A DNA stretch of 63,992 bases, the filler included, from Reticulomyxa filosa (taxonomy: Eukaryota; Protista; Foraminifera): assembly GCA_000512085.1 (NCBI GenBank). It is 13 parts of 13 records of this genome, joined end to end, with 100 filler letters (N's around TTAATTAATTAA, not from the genome) between each part and the next. Parts side by side here need not be neighbours in the genome. Positions count along the whole stretch, not along the records: positions 48,012 to 54,436 come from ASPP01018427.1; 12 more parts are not named here. One strand, written 5' to 3'. The notes under the pieces are model-generated. The model did not search any database. It saw only the letters and a list, made by a program, of their open reading frames with translations, and was not told the origin of the DNA. This document shows, in pieces, positions 1,843 through 54,436 of this stretch (the first letter of the stretch is position 1; every line of letters starts with the position of its first letter). Position numbers and translations under genes: made by a program.

Positions 1843-3229
1843 CTATCCCCAAACATGAATAGGGCCTTTTCCGGAACCATAACACATGCCAATATCACAG
1901 CAACGGCCATTGTTTCTCTTGCTTTTCTTTTCTTTTTTTAATTGCAGAAATTTAATGCAAAATATTCCCCAATCTTCTTCATAATCTCCATAGAGTATAC
2001 TCAATCTCTTATCTGACCGAACATCACAAAAACGAATTGTATTATCCAATGATCCAGAACATATCACATTTGAATTACCAATCTCTTTATTATTTACTAC
2101 AAATGGTGAATATTCAACACACATCACAGTACCTCTATGCCCTTCGAATAGTTGAATTTGTTGACCAGATCGAACATCCCACAAACGAACACTTGCATCA
2201 TATGATCCCGATAATATTGTATTTGTACCACCACTAACTCCTAATTCATCTGATCCATACTTTATATCTTTCACTCCAAGTGCATGTCCTTTGAAAACAA
2301 GTAATTTTTTGGTTGTTTCAACATCCCATACACAAATATTTTTATCGCGTGAACCAGAACAAATTGTATATCCACTACCACCAATCACACCAATGCTATT
2401 ATTTTCATTACTATTGCTTTGCAGTGGTGAAAATCCCGCACATGAAACACTATCTCCATGTCCATAGAAATAATGCAATGTTTTGGATGTTTCTACATCC
2501 CACAAACAAATAGTACAATCACCAGATCCAGAACACAAATATCTACCACCATTAAATGATGAGAATCCAATGCAATTAACGCTGTTAGTGTGCCCATTGA
2601 ATATTTGAAATTGTTTGTTATCTTTAACATCCCAAAAATAAATTTTTTTGTCAATTGACGAAGAACAAATAACATTACGACGATGGTTATGATAATGATA
2701 TGGTGAAAATTTCACACAACATACATTATTTGAATATGTGAATGACTGAATTTGTTTATTGGTCTCTATATCCCATATACGAACTGTTTTATCATCTGAT
2801 CCAGAACAAAGGAATTGAACAGAATTGAATATTGAATGGTCGATACTGTTCACACATCCAGTGTGTCCATGGAAGCCATTGGGTAATTTATATGATGAAT
2901 GAAATGTGTCAAATCTGAAGACGGAAATTGCCTGTGTTAAATTATGATAGTGAGTAATTATAAAAAATGAATATTCGAACATTTGATTGCTATTGAAGCA
3001 AAAAAAACATAACATATTTGGCCACAAGTTTGTTAAAATCATAAATCCATCCTACTTTGATGTTTGACGATCGGATCCAATGTTGAATAATTAATTGGAT
3101 CTCTTCATCTTCTGACTGACATCACAAATCACACAGTAAGTACAAGACACAAAAAAACTAAGGACATGAACTTAAGTTTACCAATACTGGCTGTGTCGAC
3201 GTTTGTTTTTCATTTTTAAAAAAAATCAT
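1843..3229 (-). CDS. WD40-repeat protein of a lineage-expanded family, with short N-terminal helical motif (3 exons, intact)
   Basis: MIFFKNEKQTSTQPVL|SEDEEIQLIIQHWIRSSNIKVGWIYDFNKLVAKY|AISVFRFD... followed by about 7 GH...SGSxDxTxRxWD repeats ending HVWG; both introns phase 0. Confidence 0.9.
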
Positions 3230-48011: not shown

Positions 48012-51000
48012 ATTTTTTGTTGTATCATAATAGTGTTGCAATCGATCCGGAGGAACACTGGCGCGAACATTTTTAAGTGACTGTTCAAAATGTTTAATAG
48101 TAATATCTGGGACTTCATCTTCACTACTAAAATTGACAATATTGGCGCCCAAATCTCGAATTGGACCCATAGCGGCATCTTTGCATAAGTTTTTGATATC
48201 ACTACAACTGTAACGGTCAGTTTTTTTGGAAATCAATTGAAAGTCTTCTTCTGTCAGATTATTTTTCTGTTTTTGCACCAAGTTTCGCAGCAAGCCATAT
48301 CTCGCCTCAAAATCGGGTTGCGGGACCAATATTCGTTTGCTGAATCTTCTTAGCACTGCATCATCCAACTCTTCGGGTAGATTGGTTGCTCCAATGATAA
48401 GCACTTGCTTCTCTTGATTTGTTTGTGTCGATGCGCCGACACCATCAAACTGCACCAAAAACTCGGTCTTGATGCGTCGTGATGACTCCGCTTCTGACTT
48501 ACCGCCACGTGCAGTAAGCAGAGAGTCGATTTCATCGATAAATATGATGGAAGGTGCTTTGTCACGTGCCATTCGAAATAACGTCCGCATCAAACGTTCG
48601 GCTTCTCCGACAAACTTACTTGTTATGGACGACGCACTAATGCTAAAGAATGTGCATTTGCAAGACGACGCAACACATTTGGCAATCATTGTTTTACCAT
48701 TGCCAGGAGGACCAAATAGCAATATCCCTGTCCATGTTTTGATATGTACACATAGTAATGTGTATACGTAAAGTCCTTACATTGTTGTACATTGAAGAGG
48801 GGGGGAGGGGGGGGGGAGAAAGAGGGAAGGGAAAACTAAACCCATGCCAGGTTCTCTCAATCCCGTGAACAGTTGTGGTTTTAATGCAGGCAGAATAACA
48901 GTTTCATACAACGCCAGTTTGACACTATTCAATCCCAAGACATCTGCAAATGAAACATTTGGCGACTCTGCAATAATATCTTCCTCCAATCTCGCTTCGA
49001 AAGCAGCGTCTGGATTATCATCCGATTTCTTTTGATTTTTTTTATTGTTGTCATTGTTATTGTTATTATTGTTATTGTTATTGTTGCTATTTTGATCAGG
49101 AGGTTCGACTCCTTTGGTGTAATCGTCTTTTTTCCAATCGTCACTCGACGATGGGCCCGTTTGCGCATTGGAGACATGATTCGAAGAAGAAGAAATAAAC
49201 GTAGATTGAGTCCTTCGATGATGAGTTCCACCCTGACCTCCACGACGGTGTTGCAAGTCTGTTTTTTTGGACAAGCGAAATACTTTGACACGGAAGTCGC
49301 TTAGTTTGTTGCGATATACTTCTTTGAAGGGATGGTCGTTGGGCAATTCGTCGAATGCATTTTCCAAGAGTTTGACCCCTTTTTGATAATTTGCAAACGC
49401 ACCGCTGAAGTCGTTGTTGAGCTCACATTCACTGGCCGACTTGAAAAAAGAAGCGCCTGGGATGTCACCCTCGTTCGCATTGTCGTTGGCCGCTGGCGTT
49501 TCTTCGCTCTCTTTCAGTTCTGATGCAAACCATGACGAAGACTGCGCCAAGCTTTCCAACCGACTGAACGATGGTGTTTGTACCTCGTTCGTACGTGAAG
49601 GCTGTCATTTTTTTTTTTTTTTAATTTTTTAAAACTCGAAACAAAATAATAACAAATATGATAAAAATAAAAAATAACGCAGCTGACAATGCCAAGGAGG
49701 TGTTGGCATTTACGACCGGATTGGCATTCGTTTTGACTGGTAACTTATTGATATTGGTATTACTGTTTGCTTTTTTGGACACCTTCATTTGTGACAAAGT
49801 GGCCATGCTCATACTTTTTTCATGTTTGGCTATACTGTTGTTACTATTATTATTATTGTTGTTATTATTATTGTTATTGCTATTGTTATTAGCATTACCG
49901 GTAGTATTATTCGGTTGAATTTTGCGAGAGGAACTACCCCTTACCAAGGAATGGGAGCTTCTGTTGGCCGGTGTTGGCTTGTTGTCTTTGTCTCTTTGTT
50001 TGTCTTTGATTTTATCTTTATCCTTATCCTTATCCTTATTTTTGTCTTTTTCTTTTTTATTCGTTGCTTTGGGCTTGTCTTTGTGTTTTTCTTTTTGTTG
50101 CAATTGAAGCGCTTGAACTCTTTGGTAAGGAGTTCGAGTGACCTCGTTGAGCACTTTGAGACGAAGAACGAGAGGCAATTCATCGCAGGTATGCAATCGG
50201 TCCATGACTTCGTCATAGTTTTTGGACTCGATATTTTTGGAATTGATTTCAATGATTACACTGTTGGTTTTCAATCCGCACTCTTCGGCGACACTTCCCT
50301 TTTTGATTCTGTCAATCACGACATAGCTACGTTCCACGCTATCGGGTACCACGATGAACCCAAAGGGTCTACGGTCCAATCGCACTTCGTACTCGTGTTC
50401 ATCGCGGCATTTATCGCAAATGCGTTGCGATTTTTTGCGATCATAGCCAATCTCACGACGACGCGTCTTGCTATGTGCGCTGCACAGCTTCCGTCCACAA
50501 CGTCGACACCAATGTCTTTTCATCGATTTCTTATTGCAAATTTCGCACACATAGTCTTCGTCTTCTTCTACTTCTTCTTCACCCGCTGCCCCTTCTTCTT
50601 CTTCTTCTTCTTCTGCAGCTGCTGGTCCATCTTCCTCACGTTCTTGTTCGGTTCCTTGTTCCGGATCGGTTCTCCCTTCTCTTCATTGCCATGATCTCCA
50701 TTGGCTATAGCCGTCGTTTCCGATAACGATAATGACGAGGATAATCCTCGGCGTGGGTCATTATTTTTCGTTTTACTCTTATTACCTTCGTTGTTTCCAT
50801 TGGTCATGCTCGTCCGTTTGACCTGTTGCTTCACAGGTTTTTGATTGGTTGCCACCACTTCAGTGTTCTTACCAAACGAGAAACGTGCTTGACTTTTATG
50901 TCCATAATTTCGACTCACACTTCGGCTGGTACTACTCGGACGACTGTCCGCACTTGCCACACTCTCATTGTCTGTCAGGTCGTCCCTATCTTTGCTTCGA

Positions 51001-51692
51001 AGTAGATGCACACTTGGTGTTATCGTGCTCTGGTTACGAGGAGCTCGACTGTTGCTATTGACGGTACTTGCACTTTGCCCAATGTTTATTGTGCTGCTCA
51101 AATTGTTATCTTCCGCCGAATCGTAGCCGCTTTTGCCTGGGGGACTTTCGTCTCCTCGGATTGTCACACTCAACTCCTCTGCTGTGCTGCTGCGACTATG
51201 CGATACTCCTGTTATCATGTAATTGTTGGCTTCTTCCCCAGTGCTATGTGTGTACTTTTTTTTTTTGTTTGTTTGATTTGTAATTTGATGTGTCAGCAAA
51301 ATTCGTTATCACTCTTCCTTTTCTTTTTTTTTTTTTTTTTAATTAAATAAAATAAATAAAAAAAAAAAGAGCAAACTTCAAATTTAATGCGAACTTTGGA
51401 CTTGTTTAATAGTTTTTCAATATTTTTGAAAGTATATGTTTTCATGTGCTCTCCATTGATACTTACGATTTGTGACCCCAATTTTATCAGCGATTTGTAA
51501 GCATCCAGTTTTAAATTTACTACTTTAGCCCCTCGAATCCCGTCACATGGCATCACGTCAATTGCATCGCACACTTTTTCATTGATCTCCACGTAGTAGG
51601 TTTCTTTTTTCTTTTTTTTTTTTTTTGCCCGTCCCAAACGCAAAAAAATTAAATATTGTGTGACCAACGCGTTTGGGCTTTCTCACATTCAT
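48012..51692 (-). CDS. SPAST: Spastin-type microtubule-severing AAA ATPase with predicted PDZ-FYVE-PDZ-MIT N-terminal extension
   Basis: AAA: VILPALKPQLFTGLREP, LLFGPPGNGKT, FFSISASSITSKFVGE, IIFIDEIDS, SRRIKTEFLVQFDG. MIT at about 49265-49457, PDZ at about 50150-50395, FYVE at about 50400-50550, PDZ at about 51377-51600. The spastin call is near certain; the full fusion needs one frameshift correction near 50670. Confidence 0.8.
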
Positions 51693-52035
51693 ATGAAATC
51701 ACACAGCAAATACAATACACACACTAAAAAGTCCACAAAACTGGCATAAAGATGTTTGCTGGTTTTTTGTGAGAAAGTTACTTGCCCACAATCCAACATA
51801 AAAATTCTGCAAAAAAAAAACCCCCTCGTCCAGAGCCGTACCCAAAGTTTCTCAAGCCACGATTTCAGCAAAAGACAATTCTTGTGCACATATTGACAAA
51901 ATTAACAGCATGCACAATTGTGCACAGTGCCAGTGTTAAAAAAAAAATCAGCCTTTTGCAAAAGGGGCAAACAACTGTTAAGTACTTAACCATATTCCCT
52001 GATTTATTGACAATTCCAGATAAAAAAAAAAGAGA

Positions 52036-53338
52036 ATGCATTTTGTACTGTTTGGTGTTTTATTGCTTCTTCCTGTGGGTTGGAGTACAAATTCTGAATT
52101 AAAAACCTGGCCCTGCAAGTGGACTCTGCCGAACGCGACGTATGACTTATGCTCTTTCCAATTGAACAAAGAGTCGCAAATATCTTACTTTACAGTTTGG
52201 GATAACGACACGATTGCGAATGTTCGAAATTTTAGTTATCTCTTCAACGTTGCGGCCACATTAGTGAGTGCTCCAGAAACAGAGTCTTGTACAAATTTGA
52301 CAATGCGAAACAACTATGACCTGCCAATGGGGTATTGTTCAAACCTAACCACAAACAATCCCCAGTGTATCGGATATATCCAACCAATTAATAGCACAAG
52401 TTTATTGTTTGGTTGACATCCATCTTTTTTTAAAAAAAAAAAAAAATAAAGATAACAATTCAACCAACTAAAAGTTAATCAGCCAAACAAACAAACAAAC
52501 AAAAAAAGCTGGTGCATATCAAGCAGCACACGGGCATACAACGCCTGGATGCTATAGATTGCATGATGGCAAGGCTTCACCAGTTTGGTCATTTTATGAC
52601 AAGACGAATCCTTCTTCTGGAGTTGTCCTCACATATCCCAATGGAGATTATTGTCCTGAATATTTAGTTTCGGCATATACTATGCAAACAAACAAAAAAT
52701 ATGTATATAAGGTACACCTGGTTGTCGATTGAAAAAATACTATGACTTATATTGACTAATGACAGACAAATAGACAAATGCGTTTGGAGTTCACATGTGG
52801 TGGAAAGATAGACAATTATCCAGACAAAGAAGAAAGCGTTGCAGAAGATGGCTGCGTGTATACCATTCGAATACCAACGCTTTTTGGGTGTCCTTTGGAA
52901 TGCCCCATTGTTGATGAACGATTGTGTAATGGATATGGTGTTTGCGATTTTGACTACACCTCGCAAAAATCAAAATGTTTTTGTTTTATGGTAGGTGATA
53001 CGTTGAAAAAGTTAGCAAGGAAAAAAAAATAAACAAAAAACAGAGCAACTGTAAAAATGAATGAACACATTTATCGAAAAGGTAAATTCGGAGATGACTG
53101 TTCATTGAATGAAGACCCTGATGTGGAGACAAAAGTTGAAGTGAATGACAGTGGATACATGGCAGGATTAATTGTGATAATCATCTTGATGTTCATAACT
53201 GCTGCAATATTAATATACCTCTTTCGAAAGTTACGAAATACTCTTGCAATATCCGCTTTGAGAGCAAAGCAAGAGACTCTAAAGTCTGATGAAGACTCTG
53301 ACGATGGAATGCTAGATGATGGTGTAGACCGGTTGTAG
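52036..53338 (+). CDS. Mannose-6-phosphate-receptor-homology (MRH) + EGF type I membrane protein (MPR/ATG27-like sorting receptor)
   Basis: Signal peptide; CxWxxxxATYDL; YLFNV; NPSSGVVLTYPNGDYC; LEFTC; CVYTIRIPTLFGCP; EGF (LCNGYGVC..CFC..GKFGDDC); TM; acidic tail DEDSDDGML. Confidence 0.75.
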
Positions 53339-54086
53339 AACACTTTTTTTTAATGTTGTGTGTTTTCCCAGAGCTGCTGATCTCTTCACAAACAAAGCTA
53401 CAAAATTGCAGACTATTGCACCAATATGATTGTTATACTTTTTTTCCCCTTTCTCACAATCTAGAAAAATTAATTGTACTCGAAATTTTTCTTTTTTTTT
53501 GGTTCTGAAGTCGTACGTGCAAAAAAGTTCTAAATGTTTACCAAGGCTTTCCTAAAAGATTTTACATCACAAAACACGCCTTTTGAAAACAAACCAACAC
53601 AACGAAAAACAAGAAATAAAAGAGGAAGGAAAACTTTGCACTATTCTATGCAACAATCATCAAGCAAAAGAAAGAAAGTCCACTACATGCAGCCCTTCAA
53701 TGAAGAGATTTTATTTGTCTCGCTCCTACAGGCTTGTAGAAAGATGGACTGCATCTTTGGAAGAAGAAAAAAATAAAACAAAGCAAACAAACAAACAAAA
53801 AAAAGTAACCATTGGCAATTTACAATAAACCGGATACATAACAATTCGAACAATTCAATGCCAGATTACTTTGAATATATTTTGACTTGAACACACACAA
53901 TGAATAAAACAGAAACAAACAAAACGAAACAAAAAGAAAAAGAAAATAAAACGATAGTAATGCATTGCTTTACTAATAAACTCGACGAAAGTTCAATGTG
54001 TCAAAAGTAAATGAAAAATTGTTACAAGATATATAAAAAAAAAAAACAAAAAGAAAAGAGAAAACAATAAACCTATTGGCTGAACA

Positions 54087-54340
54087 TCAATTTCCCATTT
54101 CACTGTTATCAGTGGATGAAGGGATAGACACAACAGAATTTGGAGGAGCACCTAATTTAACAATTGCAGACCACAATATAAACTGTGATTGAGCGTCGTT
54201 GCCACAAACCTGTTTCAAATCATCCTTGGAATGGATCAAGTTCAACAAGTCCAAAAATGTGAACACACCAATATCTTCAAATTTTGTTAGGTAGCGTTCG
54301 CAGTGCAATTTCTTCAGCCACTCTTCGAACTTTGTATCAA
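54087..54340 (-). CDS. Last exon of a truncated gene encoding a C-terminal SAM domain
   Basis: FEEWLKKLHCERYLTKFEDIGVFTFLDLLNL..DDLKQV..ILWSAIVKL. Confidence 0.6.
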
Positions 54341-54399
54341 TTGTGCATATACATATATGTATATATTTTTTAAAAATTTTTAATGAGTCCTTTCTCTAC

Positions 54400-54436
<37 letters not shown>

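Follow-up and report, generated by a model that had tools for sequence, protein, structure and literature searches.

Microtubule-severing enzymes usually owe their position in the cell to a MIT domain, a membrane hairpin or adaptors that are separate subunits. Spastin (SPAST/SPG4) combines MIT with a microtubule-binding domain (MTBD) and a meiotic-clade AAA ATPase; a hydrophobic hairpin is not universal among spastins, and in animals spastin has a partner, protrudin (ZFYVE27), a FYVE-type finger protein laid out with a hairpin and an FFAT (two phenylalanines in an acidic tract) motif. We know of no description of FIGL1 with a MIT domain. Here we analyse a locus of the foraminiferan Reticulomyxa filosa (assembly GCA_000512085.1) that appears to join targeting-type domains and a spastin-like ATPase in one polypeptide. 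The window, that is, the whole stretch of DNA analysed, has 63,992 nucleotides including filler and consists of 13 joined parts; the gene in question lies on the minus strand of one of them, the piece at 48012–54436 (ASPP01018427.1), which is AT-rich eukaryotic DNA with short introns. With a probability of roughly 85%, we read its five consecutive minus-strand open reading frame (ORF) blocks (48012–51692) as a single gene encoding a PDZ1–FYVE–PDZ2–MIT–AAA fusion. Such a gene would span ~3.7 kb in at least five exons, and its protein of ~1,100 residues would consist of PDZ1, a Ser-rich linker, FYVE, PDZ2, a charged linker, MIT, a basic, N-rich linker and a spastin-like meiotic-clade AAA. It would belong to a lineage-specific clade of spastin-like ATPases from Reticulomyxa and related environmental protists, several members of which have PDZ-containing N-terminal extensions.

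Judged from the sequences, the joining of PDZ–FYVE–PDZ to MIT–AAA is a real, conserved fusion and not a pair of neighbouring genes, because a Reticulomyxa paralogue and related environmental genomes show the same layout again. A word search with the AAA exon returned the 92% identical P0120, "AAA domain protein [Reticulomyxa filosa]", whose contig (L006, ASPP01005229.1) comes from the R. filosa draft assembly. As its DNA is 71–79% identical to the window, L006 represents a paralogous locus rather than the same one, and R. filosa has at least three further paralogues of the window AAA (at least four paralogues in all). L006 contains an uninterrupted ORF of 603 codons comprising an acidic N-terminus, FYVE, PDZ2, a charged linker and MIT, with Pfam scores of 33.1 bits for PDZ, 31.7 for FYVE and 18.5 for MIT. 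At the position of the window's intron 3, L006 reads through in frame and is without only the ~70-nt T/A-rich core; the fusion point thus holds at the level of the ORF, with no splicing assumed. In L006 the AAA comes next, behind an intron in exactly the position of the window's phase-1 intron ahead of GPPGNGKT. An exact look-up showed the 603-amino-acid (aa) ORF to be absent from the protein collection searched, and the window's own proteins did not turn up in the databases searched.

The full domain order was found in a second species, represented by an environmental scaffold (L009, ENA ERZ23488602) with an AAA 66% identical to the window's. PDZ1, FYVE, PDZ2, MIT and AAA stand there on a single strand in the order of the window, and a GT..AG model without stops distributes them over six exons (ATG and PDZ1; Ser-rich linker and FYVE; PDZ2; linker; linker, MIT and the N-terminal AAA part; AAA), with introns of 103–145 nt and one further intron near the C-terminus. 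The two loci have two intron positions in common, a phase-0 one behind PDZ1 and a phase-1 one ahead of the P-loop, and Pfam recognised FYVE (30.1 bits), MIT (29.1) and AAA (134) in L009. Together, the single ORF of L006 and the complete order and shared introns of L009 bear out the architecture that a first-pass annotation had proposed from the window alone. A further species from another sample (L003) shows PDZ1–FYVE–PDZ2 in the same order. In a JGI contig of a close relative (L001), 88% identical in FYVE–PDZ2, the end of PDZ1, the Ser-rich linker, FYVE and PDZ2 follow one another, Ser-rich linker and FYVE being in one frame; since the window's intron 2 is missing from it, L001 has the appearance of a spliced transcript. 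L011, which belongs to another subclade of the AAA tree, has on its minus strand PDZ1, a long S/Q-rich linker, MIT and the N-terminal AAA part, the FYVE–PDZ2 portion being missing. Three other loci (L007, L008 and L012) have the AAA gene at the contig start and are uninformative on N-terminal domains. Between the window and L006 or L001, the proportion of nonsynonymous differences (pN) was 0.03–0.16 and that of synonymous differences (pS) 0.45–0.93 in PDZ1, FYVE–PDZ2, MIT and AAA, synonymous sites being near saturation; the low pN relative to pS indicates that all parts are kept by selection.

The gene model is given in Table 1. Domain searches were run exon by exon, each window exon separately; all four introns are of the GT..AG type, and the exon-by-exon check found no stop inside the exons. 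Three joins predicted by the first-pass annotation stood up: the ATG at 51692 connects to the ETYYVEI PDZ exon through intron 1, and both phase-0 introns, before the Ser-rich and the MIT exons, have proper ends. Intron 4 is additional to the three introns listed in that annotation. For exon 1, a donor GTGAGA after MN combined with the acceptor at 51611 would likewise keep the reading frame; the start codon of L009 stands four codons upstream of the YYVEI motif, without an intervening intron. A divergently oriented neighbouring gene begins 344 nt from the window ATG, and a 5′ end near 51692 is consistent with this. Ahead of its AG, intron 1 has a T-run and then an A-run, resembling other introns of the piece. 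An odd make-up is common to introns of both genes (51604–51664, 51255–51376 and 49602–49713 on the minus strand, ~52412–52508 on the plus strand), which have GT, a T-run and then a long A-run or CAAA repeats abutting the AG. Seen relative to L006, intron 3 looks like a T/A-rich insertion of ~70 nt, which hints at a recent gain or loss of the intron. A mini-exon starting from an ATG at 49608 was ruled out, the sole possible intron being 20 nt. The Ser-rich linker is 41% identical to that of L001 over 181 aa, and the homologous K/D/E/N-rich linker is likewise open in L006 and L009.

Table 1. Features of the proposed fusion gene, in order of transcription (positions along the window).
Feature	Position	Strand	Remarks
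Exon 1	51665–51692	-	inferred only; ATG, nine codons and 1 nt; MNVRKPKRV
Intron 1	51604–51664	-	61 nt; GT..AG; phase 1; split codon E, then TYYVEI
PDZ1 exon	51377–51603	-	divergent PDZ-like domain; ends ..IKFE
Intron 2	51255–51376	-	122 nt; GTTTGC..AG; phase 0
Ser-rich low-complexity linker	50571–51254	-	open to stop 50568–50570; no Pfam family
Overlap zone, Ser-rich and FYVE frames both open	50571–50682	-	+1 nt (or -2) joins the frames
FYVE-type zinc finger	50398–50565	-	Pfam 32.1 bits
PDZ2	50161–50373	-	Pfam 30.9 bits; intact R-x-P-F-G-F carboxylate-binding loop
K/D/E/N-rich low-complexity linker	49714–50160	-	ORF open throughout
Intron 3	49602–49713	-	112 nt; GTAAAT..AG; phase 0; joins PDZ2 linker to MIT
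MIT exon	48842–49601	-	MIT ~49227–49484, N-rich/basic linker, N-terminal AAA part
Intron 4	48728–48841	-	114 nt; GTTTAG..AG; phase 1; directly before P-loop GPPGNGKT
AAA cassette exon	48012–48727	-	cut by the edge of the piece

In the AAA exon (block 48012–48737), Pfam recognised the AAA domain with 133 bits and AAA_lid_3 with 37 bits; the Vps4_C helix scored 17.5 bits (E 0.004, cut-off 21.3), the gene being cut by the edge of the piece. An alignment (A7) located Walker A (GPPGNGKT), pore loop 1 (SKFVGE), Walker B (IIFIDEID), pore loop 2 (SSRRIKTEFL), sensor-1 (GATN), the arginine fingers (LRRF), the lid and the start of the C-terminal helix, so that the catalytic and pore-loop motifs are complete, the aromatic residue of pore loop 1 being F. 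Searched against the PDB, the exon matched FIGL1 (243 bits) and spastin (240 bits) at the top of the meiotic clade, and AFG2 and Cdc48 scored about equally. We placed it in an unrooted tree of 48 rows built without katanin or VPS4 rows. The window and P0120 fell into a clade of 15 rows (SH-like approximate likelihood-ratio test, SH-aLRT, 97), which also holds the R. filosa paralogues P0133 and P0137 and environmental or marine sequences; this clade lies outside the FIGL1 clade (SH-aLRT 99), so that membership in FIGL1 was ruled out, and it is loosely joined (87) to other MIT–AAA proteins. In this tree the window grouped in a clade of its own and not with the animal spastins. By sequence, "spastin-like" is the right label for this ATPase. 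P0120 continues past the cut edge of the window (..YDYNKKFGS), and a C-terminal extension beyond ..W/Y-N-x-K-F-G was observed in all fetched members of the clade (among P0120, P0121–P0128, P0133 and P0137), made up of GS, a short hydrophobic stretch and LP-x-x-(M/L)R; P0137 has a degenerate version, and no such extension occurs in the A7 rows of animal spastin and FIGL1. In L013, a TARA scaffold, ~1.3 kb (816–2097) interrupts the AAA gene just past the P-loop and carries a protein-kinase ORF on the opposite strand.

The MIT domain scored 23.9 bits in Pfam (E 4.6e-5, block 48840–49601), below the cut-off of 30, and was also recognised by Pfam in L006, L009 and L011. A profile of four MIT sequences (A6) retrieved the MIT domains of VPS4A and MITD1 first from the PDB, with a best E of 6.6e-4. 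The C-terminal 80 aa of the MIT exon matched VPS4 and spastin at E 5e-9 to 4e-8. A word search with the MIT exon gave no match in the length band of 140–444 aa, and a metagenome scan with it retrieved only a generic AAA of 31% identity (L002).

FYVE and PDZ2, both named in the first-pass annotation, exceeded their Pfam cut-offs (27.8 bits for FYVE, searched in block 49714–50649, and 23.2 bits for PDZ2). The loop of PDZ2 reads RRPFGF. An AlphaFold2 model of FYVE–PDZ2 reached a predicted local distance difference test (pLDDT) of 78, and a Foldseek search returned NHERF/PDZK1-type PDZ domains with template modelling (TM) scores, normalized by the target, of 0.68–0.85; a Protein Atlas search with FYVE–PDZ2 gave a best score of 0.82 and no usable match. 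The finger has eight zinc ligands with FYVE spacing, seven Cys and one His in CSAH (alignment A5). The same alignment confirmed the lack of WxxD reported in the first pass, and of the other motifs of the pocket for phosphatidylinositol 3-phosphate (PI3P) the window FYVE reads KRHWCR for RRHHCR and RIC for RVC. L009 has RQHRCR at the position of KRHWCR, and ahead of the basic motif the window's turret loop has three residues fewer than that of P0007, a stand-alone FYVE–PDZ protein. With neither WxxD nor the HH of RRHHCR the pocket is degenerate, which makes PI3P binding doubtful; a structural or protein-binding zinc finger is more likely than a reader of PI3P.

PDZ1 is a divergent PDZ-like domain: in Pfam it reached only an E of 0.02, below the cut-off (block 51377–51610), and as a single sequence a P of 2e-4 in hhalign. 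An alignment of four orthologues (A4) matched the PDZ profile A2 with 96.3% probability over 78 columns (hhalign, E 1.6e-9), and the ten best matches of the A4 profile in the PDB were all PDZ domains, with weak E values. An AlphaFold2 model from the four sequences was uninformative (pLDDT 38). The carboxylate-binding loop is degenerate in the window (KVCDAI) and reads RPFGL in L011. The comparison of PDZ1 between the window and L001 gave a pN of 0.06 and a pS of 0.45.

In an exhaustive search with the FYVE–PDZ2 exon among 1.84 billion protein representatives, none of the 119 significant relatives carried an AAA or MIT like the window's. The closest full-length relatives found for the module were small stand-alone FYVE–PDZ proteins, P0007 (242 aa), which retains the canonical RRHHCR, and P0051 (247 aa), which has its own stop and unrelated neighbour genes. 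P0002, from GCA_024449935.1, is a FYVE–PDZ fragment with 46% identity. Stand-alone loci with the same FYVE-to-PDZ spacing lie in L004 (1574–2317) and L005 (1318–2061). These proteins may form a small family not yet described, from which the cassette came. On one reading, suggested by the domain content of L011, a stand-alone FYVE–PDZ cassette was captured into an older PDZ–MIT–AAA gene; a loss of FYVE–PDZ2 in L011 is equally possible. The L011 contig (1–4200) flips into a plus-strand copy of the AAA (3–1456), which could be either an inverted duplication or a chimeric assembly. Among the papers of the library searched, none links Reticulomyxa with spastin, and the only one in which spastin, FYVE and PDZ occur alongside domain architecture is a review of neuronal spastin.

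The blocks of the window could also be explained by two adjacent genes in the same orientation, a PDZ–FYVE–PDZ gene terminated by the stop at 49621 and, apart from it, a spastin gene. The unspliced FYVE–PDZ2 ORF does run into a stop at 49621–49623, stand-alone FYVE–PDZ proteins of ~245 aa exist with, in the case of P0051, unrelated neighbours, and GenBank splits the paralogous contig L006 into a 603-residue FYVE/PDZ protein (78–1978) and a 250-residue AAA protein (2283–3035). However, the second of these models begins only at an internal Met past the P-loop and is plainly truncated, the sequence from FYVE to MIT is one ORF in L006, and the exons of L009 all join in frame. In the window itself, only 17 nt separate the stop from the opening of the MIT frame at 49604, and, as the first-pass annotation had remarked, no in-frame ATG precedes the MIT domain in its exon. 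Two genes are thus very improbable. A single gene might instead give alternative products, either a MIT–AAA isoform from an internal start (in-frame Met at ~49790–49830) or, through retention of intron 3, a PDZ–FYVE–PDZ protein with a hydrophobic tail and no ATPase, or both. The linker does contain in-frame Met codons ahead of the intron-3 donor, and reading through the intron adds ~20 hydrophobic residues before a stop, but this tail is the translation of a T-rich intron, intron 2 behaves alike, L006 is without the hydrophobic segment, and an internal promoter is unsupported. We regard such products as rather unlikely.

Several observations weigh against the fusion gene, among them a frame break in the window copy. 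The Ser-rich frame stops at 50568 and the FYVE frame is open only from 50682 (and on to 49714), which leaves an overlap of ~110 nt in which one base has to be added or two removed. The first pass had placed a 1-nt frameshift near 50670; the break is real, but it may lie anywhere in 50571–50682, and 50670 is one option among others. A 27-nt "intron" (GTGAGG..CAG) to mend it was ruled out, being a multiple of three and too short. L001 and L009 hold the Ser-rich linker and FYVE together in one ORF or one exon, so that only the window copy has the break; it could accordingly be a recently disabled paralogue, with intact copies among the at least three others of R. filosa; the ~70-nt T/A-rich insertion at the junction of PDZ2 linker and MIT would fit a pseudogene as well. 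Against this, no other stop or frameshift occurs in the ~3.3 kb of coding sequence, all domains are under strong purifying selection, and the insertion has a good phase-0 donor and acceptor at its borders and resembles other introns of the piece. Also, L006, from the same draft assembly, needs frame corrections in or beside A-runs, which suggests base-calling errors; for this reason a one-base error of the draft assembly is the most likely cause of the break, the G4 run at 50589–50592 being one candidate for an under-called homopolymer. A recent disabling mutation is possible, and a pseudogene as a whole improbable. Other points to be set against the fusion come from the related loci: L006 requires two frame corrections in a low-complexity stretch between MIT and the N-terminal AAA part, and L001 (1–1179) has an extra T exactly at the PDZ1/Ser-rich junction, where the PDZ1 frame meets TAA two codons on, and one A too many in an A8 run within PDZ2. 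The frame shifts of L006 fall within 1700–1890, where there are A6 and A8 runs and a (CTT)n repeat; the oddities of L001 may reflect errors in the contig or aberrant splicing. Finally, our tree, which lacks a katanin or VPS4 outgroup, does not establish the AAA clade as orthologous to the animal spastins, and microtubule severing and the role in targeting are inferred only. A single fusion gene remains our preferred explanation for the locus.

The divergently oriented neighbour on the plus strand (52036–53338) has four exons and would encode a protein with a signal-peptide-like start, a Cys-rich ectodomain, one transmembrane segment and an acidic tail ending ..DDGMLDDGVDRL; it matched no Pfam family. 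Farther on, a 73-codon ORF on the minus strand (54087–54308) is likewise without a Pfam match, and the piece ends in a run of ~40 A (54400–54436).

By analogy with spastin, the AAA ring of the fusion protein would act as a hexameric, ATP-driven translocase of tubulin tails that severs or remodels microtubules, and its MIT domain would dock ESCRT-III-like MIT-interacting motif (MIM) peptides. The N-terminal PDZ/FYVE module may provide a handle for targeting or scaffolding, with PDZ2 binding the C-terminal peptide of a membrane or cytoskeletal partner and setting the site at which the enzyme acts. Targeting to membranes or cargo by this module is what its domains suggest, and a link to the microtubule dynamics of reticulopodia can be hypothesized. 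On the first-pass reading, which is likewise hypothetical, the fusion would be a Rosetta stone for the spastin–protrudin pair and tether severing to phosphoinositides or the cortex. A broader proposal, possible but doubtful, would have a severing-type AAA family private to Foraminifera and their relatives, positioned by its PDZ domains and delivered to cargo or membrane sites in reticulopodia, in which FYVE–PDZ2 was captured from a small stand-alone protein into an older gene of the L011 type. The peptide recognized by PDZ2, and by PDZ1 in copies with an intact loop, would then be the C-terminus of, e.g., a membrane protein, a motor or tubulin itself, and a family so positioned would contribute to the exceptionally fast microtubule turnover in reticulopodia. 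The host organisms have pseudopodial networks that rely on unusually dynamic microtubules, and a conserved covalent fusion to PDZ and FYVE would be a different targeting solution for severing enzymes, with the PDZ ligands as a concrete and testable handle. The analysis also corrects the public annotation of the L006 paralogue, which at present divides the gene between a "FYVE/PDZ" protein and a truncated "AAA domain protein".

Among the known systems, VPS4 has the same combination of MIT and a single AAA; VPS4B is the best PDB match to the N-terminal AAA segment (39 bits) and the MIT of VPS4A the first match of the MIT profile. VPS4 is, however, missing from the top 60 PDB matches of the AAA exon, which all reach at least 224 bits, and the segment between lid and C-terminal helix aligns with spastin and FIGL1 with gaps of only 1–2 residues (A7); this segment being as short as that of spastin, the window AAA is without the VPS4 beta-domain. 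FIGL1 equals spastin in its PDB score against the AAA exon to within 3 bits and has identical local motifs, e.g., SSRRIKTEFLVQ, but its rows form a clade that does not include the window. The layout of protrudin differs by its hydrophobic hairpin, which is not seen in the window protein. The stand-alone FYVE–PDZ proteins P0007 and P0051 have the same FYVE-(E/D)(Y/F/H)x-PDZ module with identical spacing; they differ by their small size, a start and a stop of their own and neighbours that are unrelated, and P0007 has RRHHCR where the fused versions have KRHWCR or RQHRCR. With spastin, the window protein shares a MIT domain upstream of a basic linker and AAA cassette, GPPGNGKT, an aromatic pore loop 1, the SSRRxKTEFL pore loop 2, arginine fingers, probably a Vps4_C-type C-terminal helix, and the absence of the VPS4 beta-domain insertion, the AAA being 53% identical to vertebrate spastin. 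No N-terminal hydrophobic hairpin of the spastin M1 type was found in any window exon, the hydrophobic runs being translated introns only. The window protein differs from spastin in the F, not Y, of pore loop 1 and in the placement of its AAA in a separate 15-member clade; P0120 and the fetched relatives extend past KFGS, a point before which the window copy is cut. It also differs from spastin in its N-terminus, where ~650 additional residues carry PDZ1, FYVE and PDZ2.

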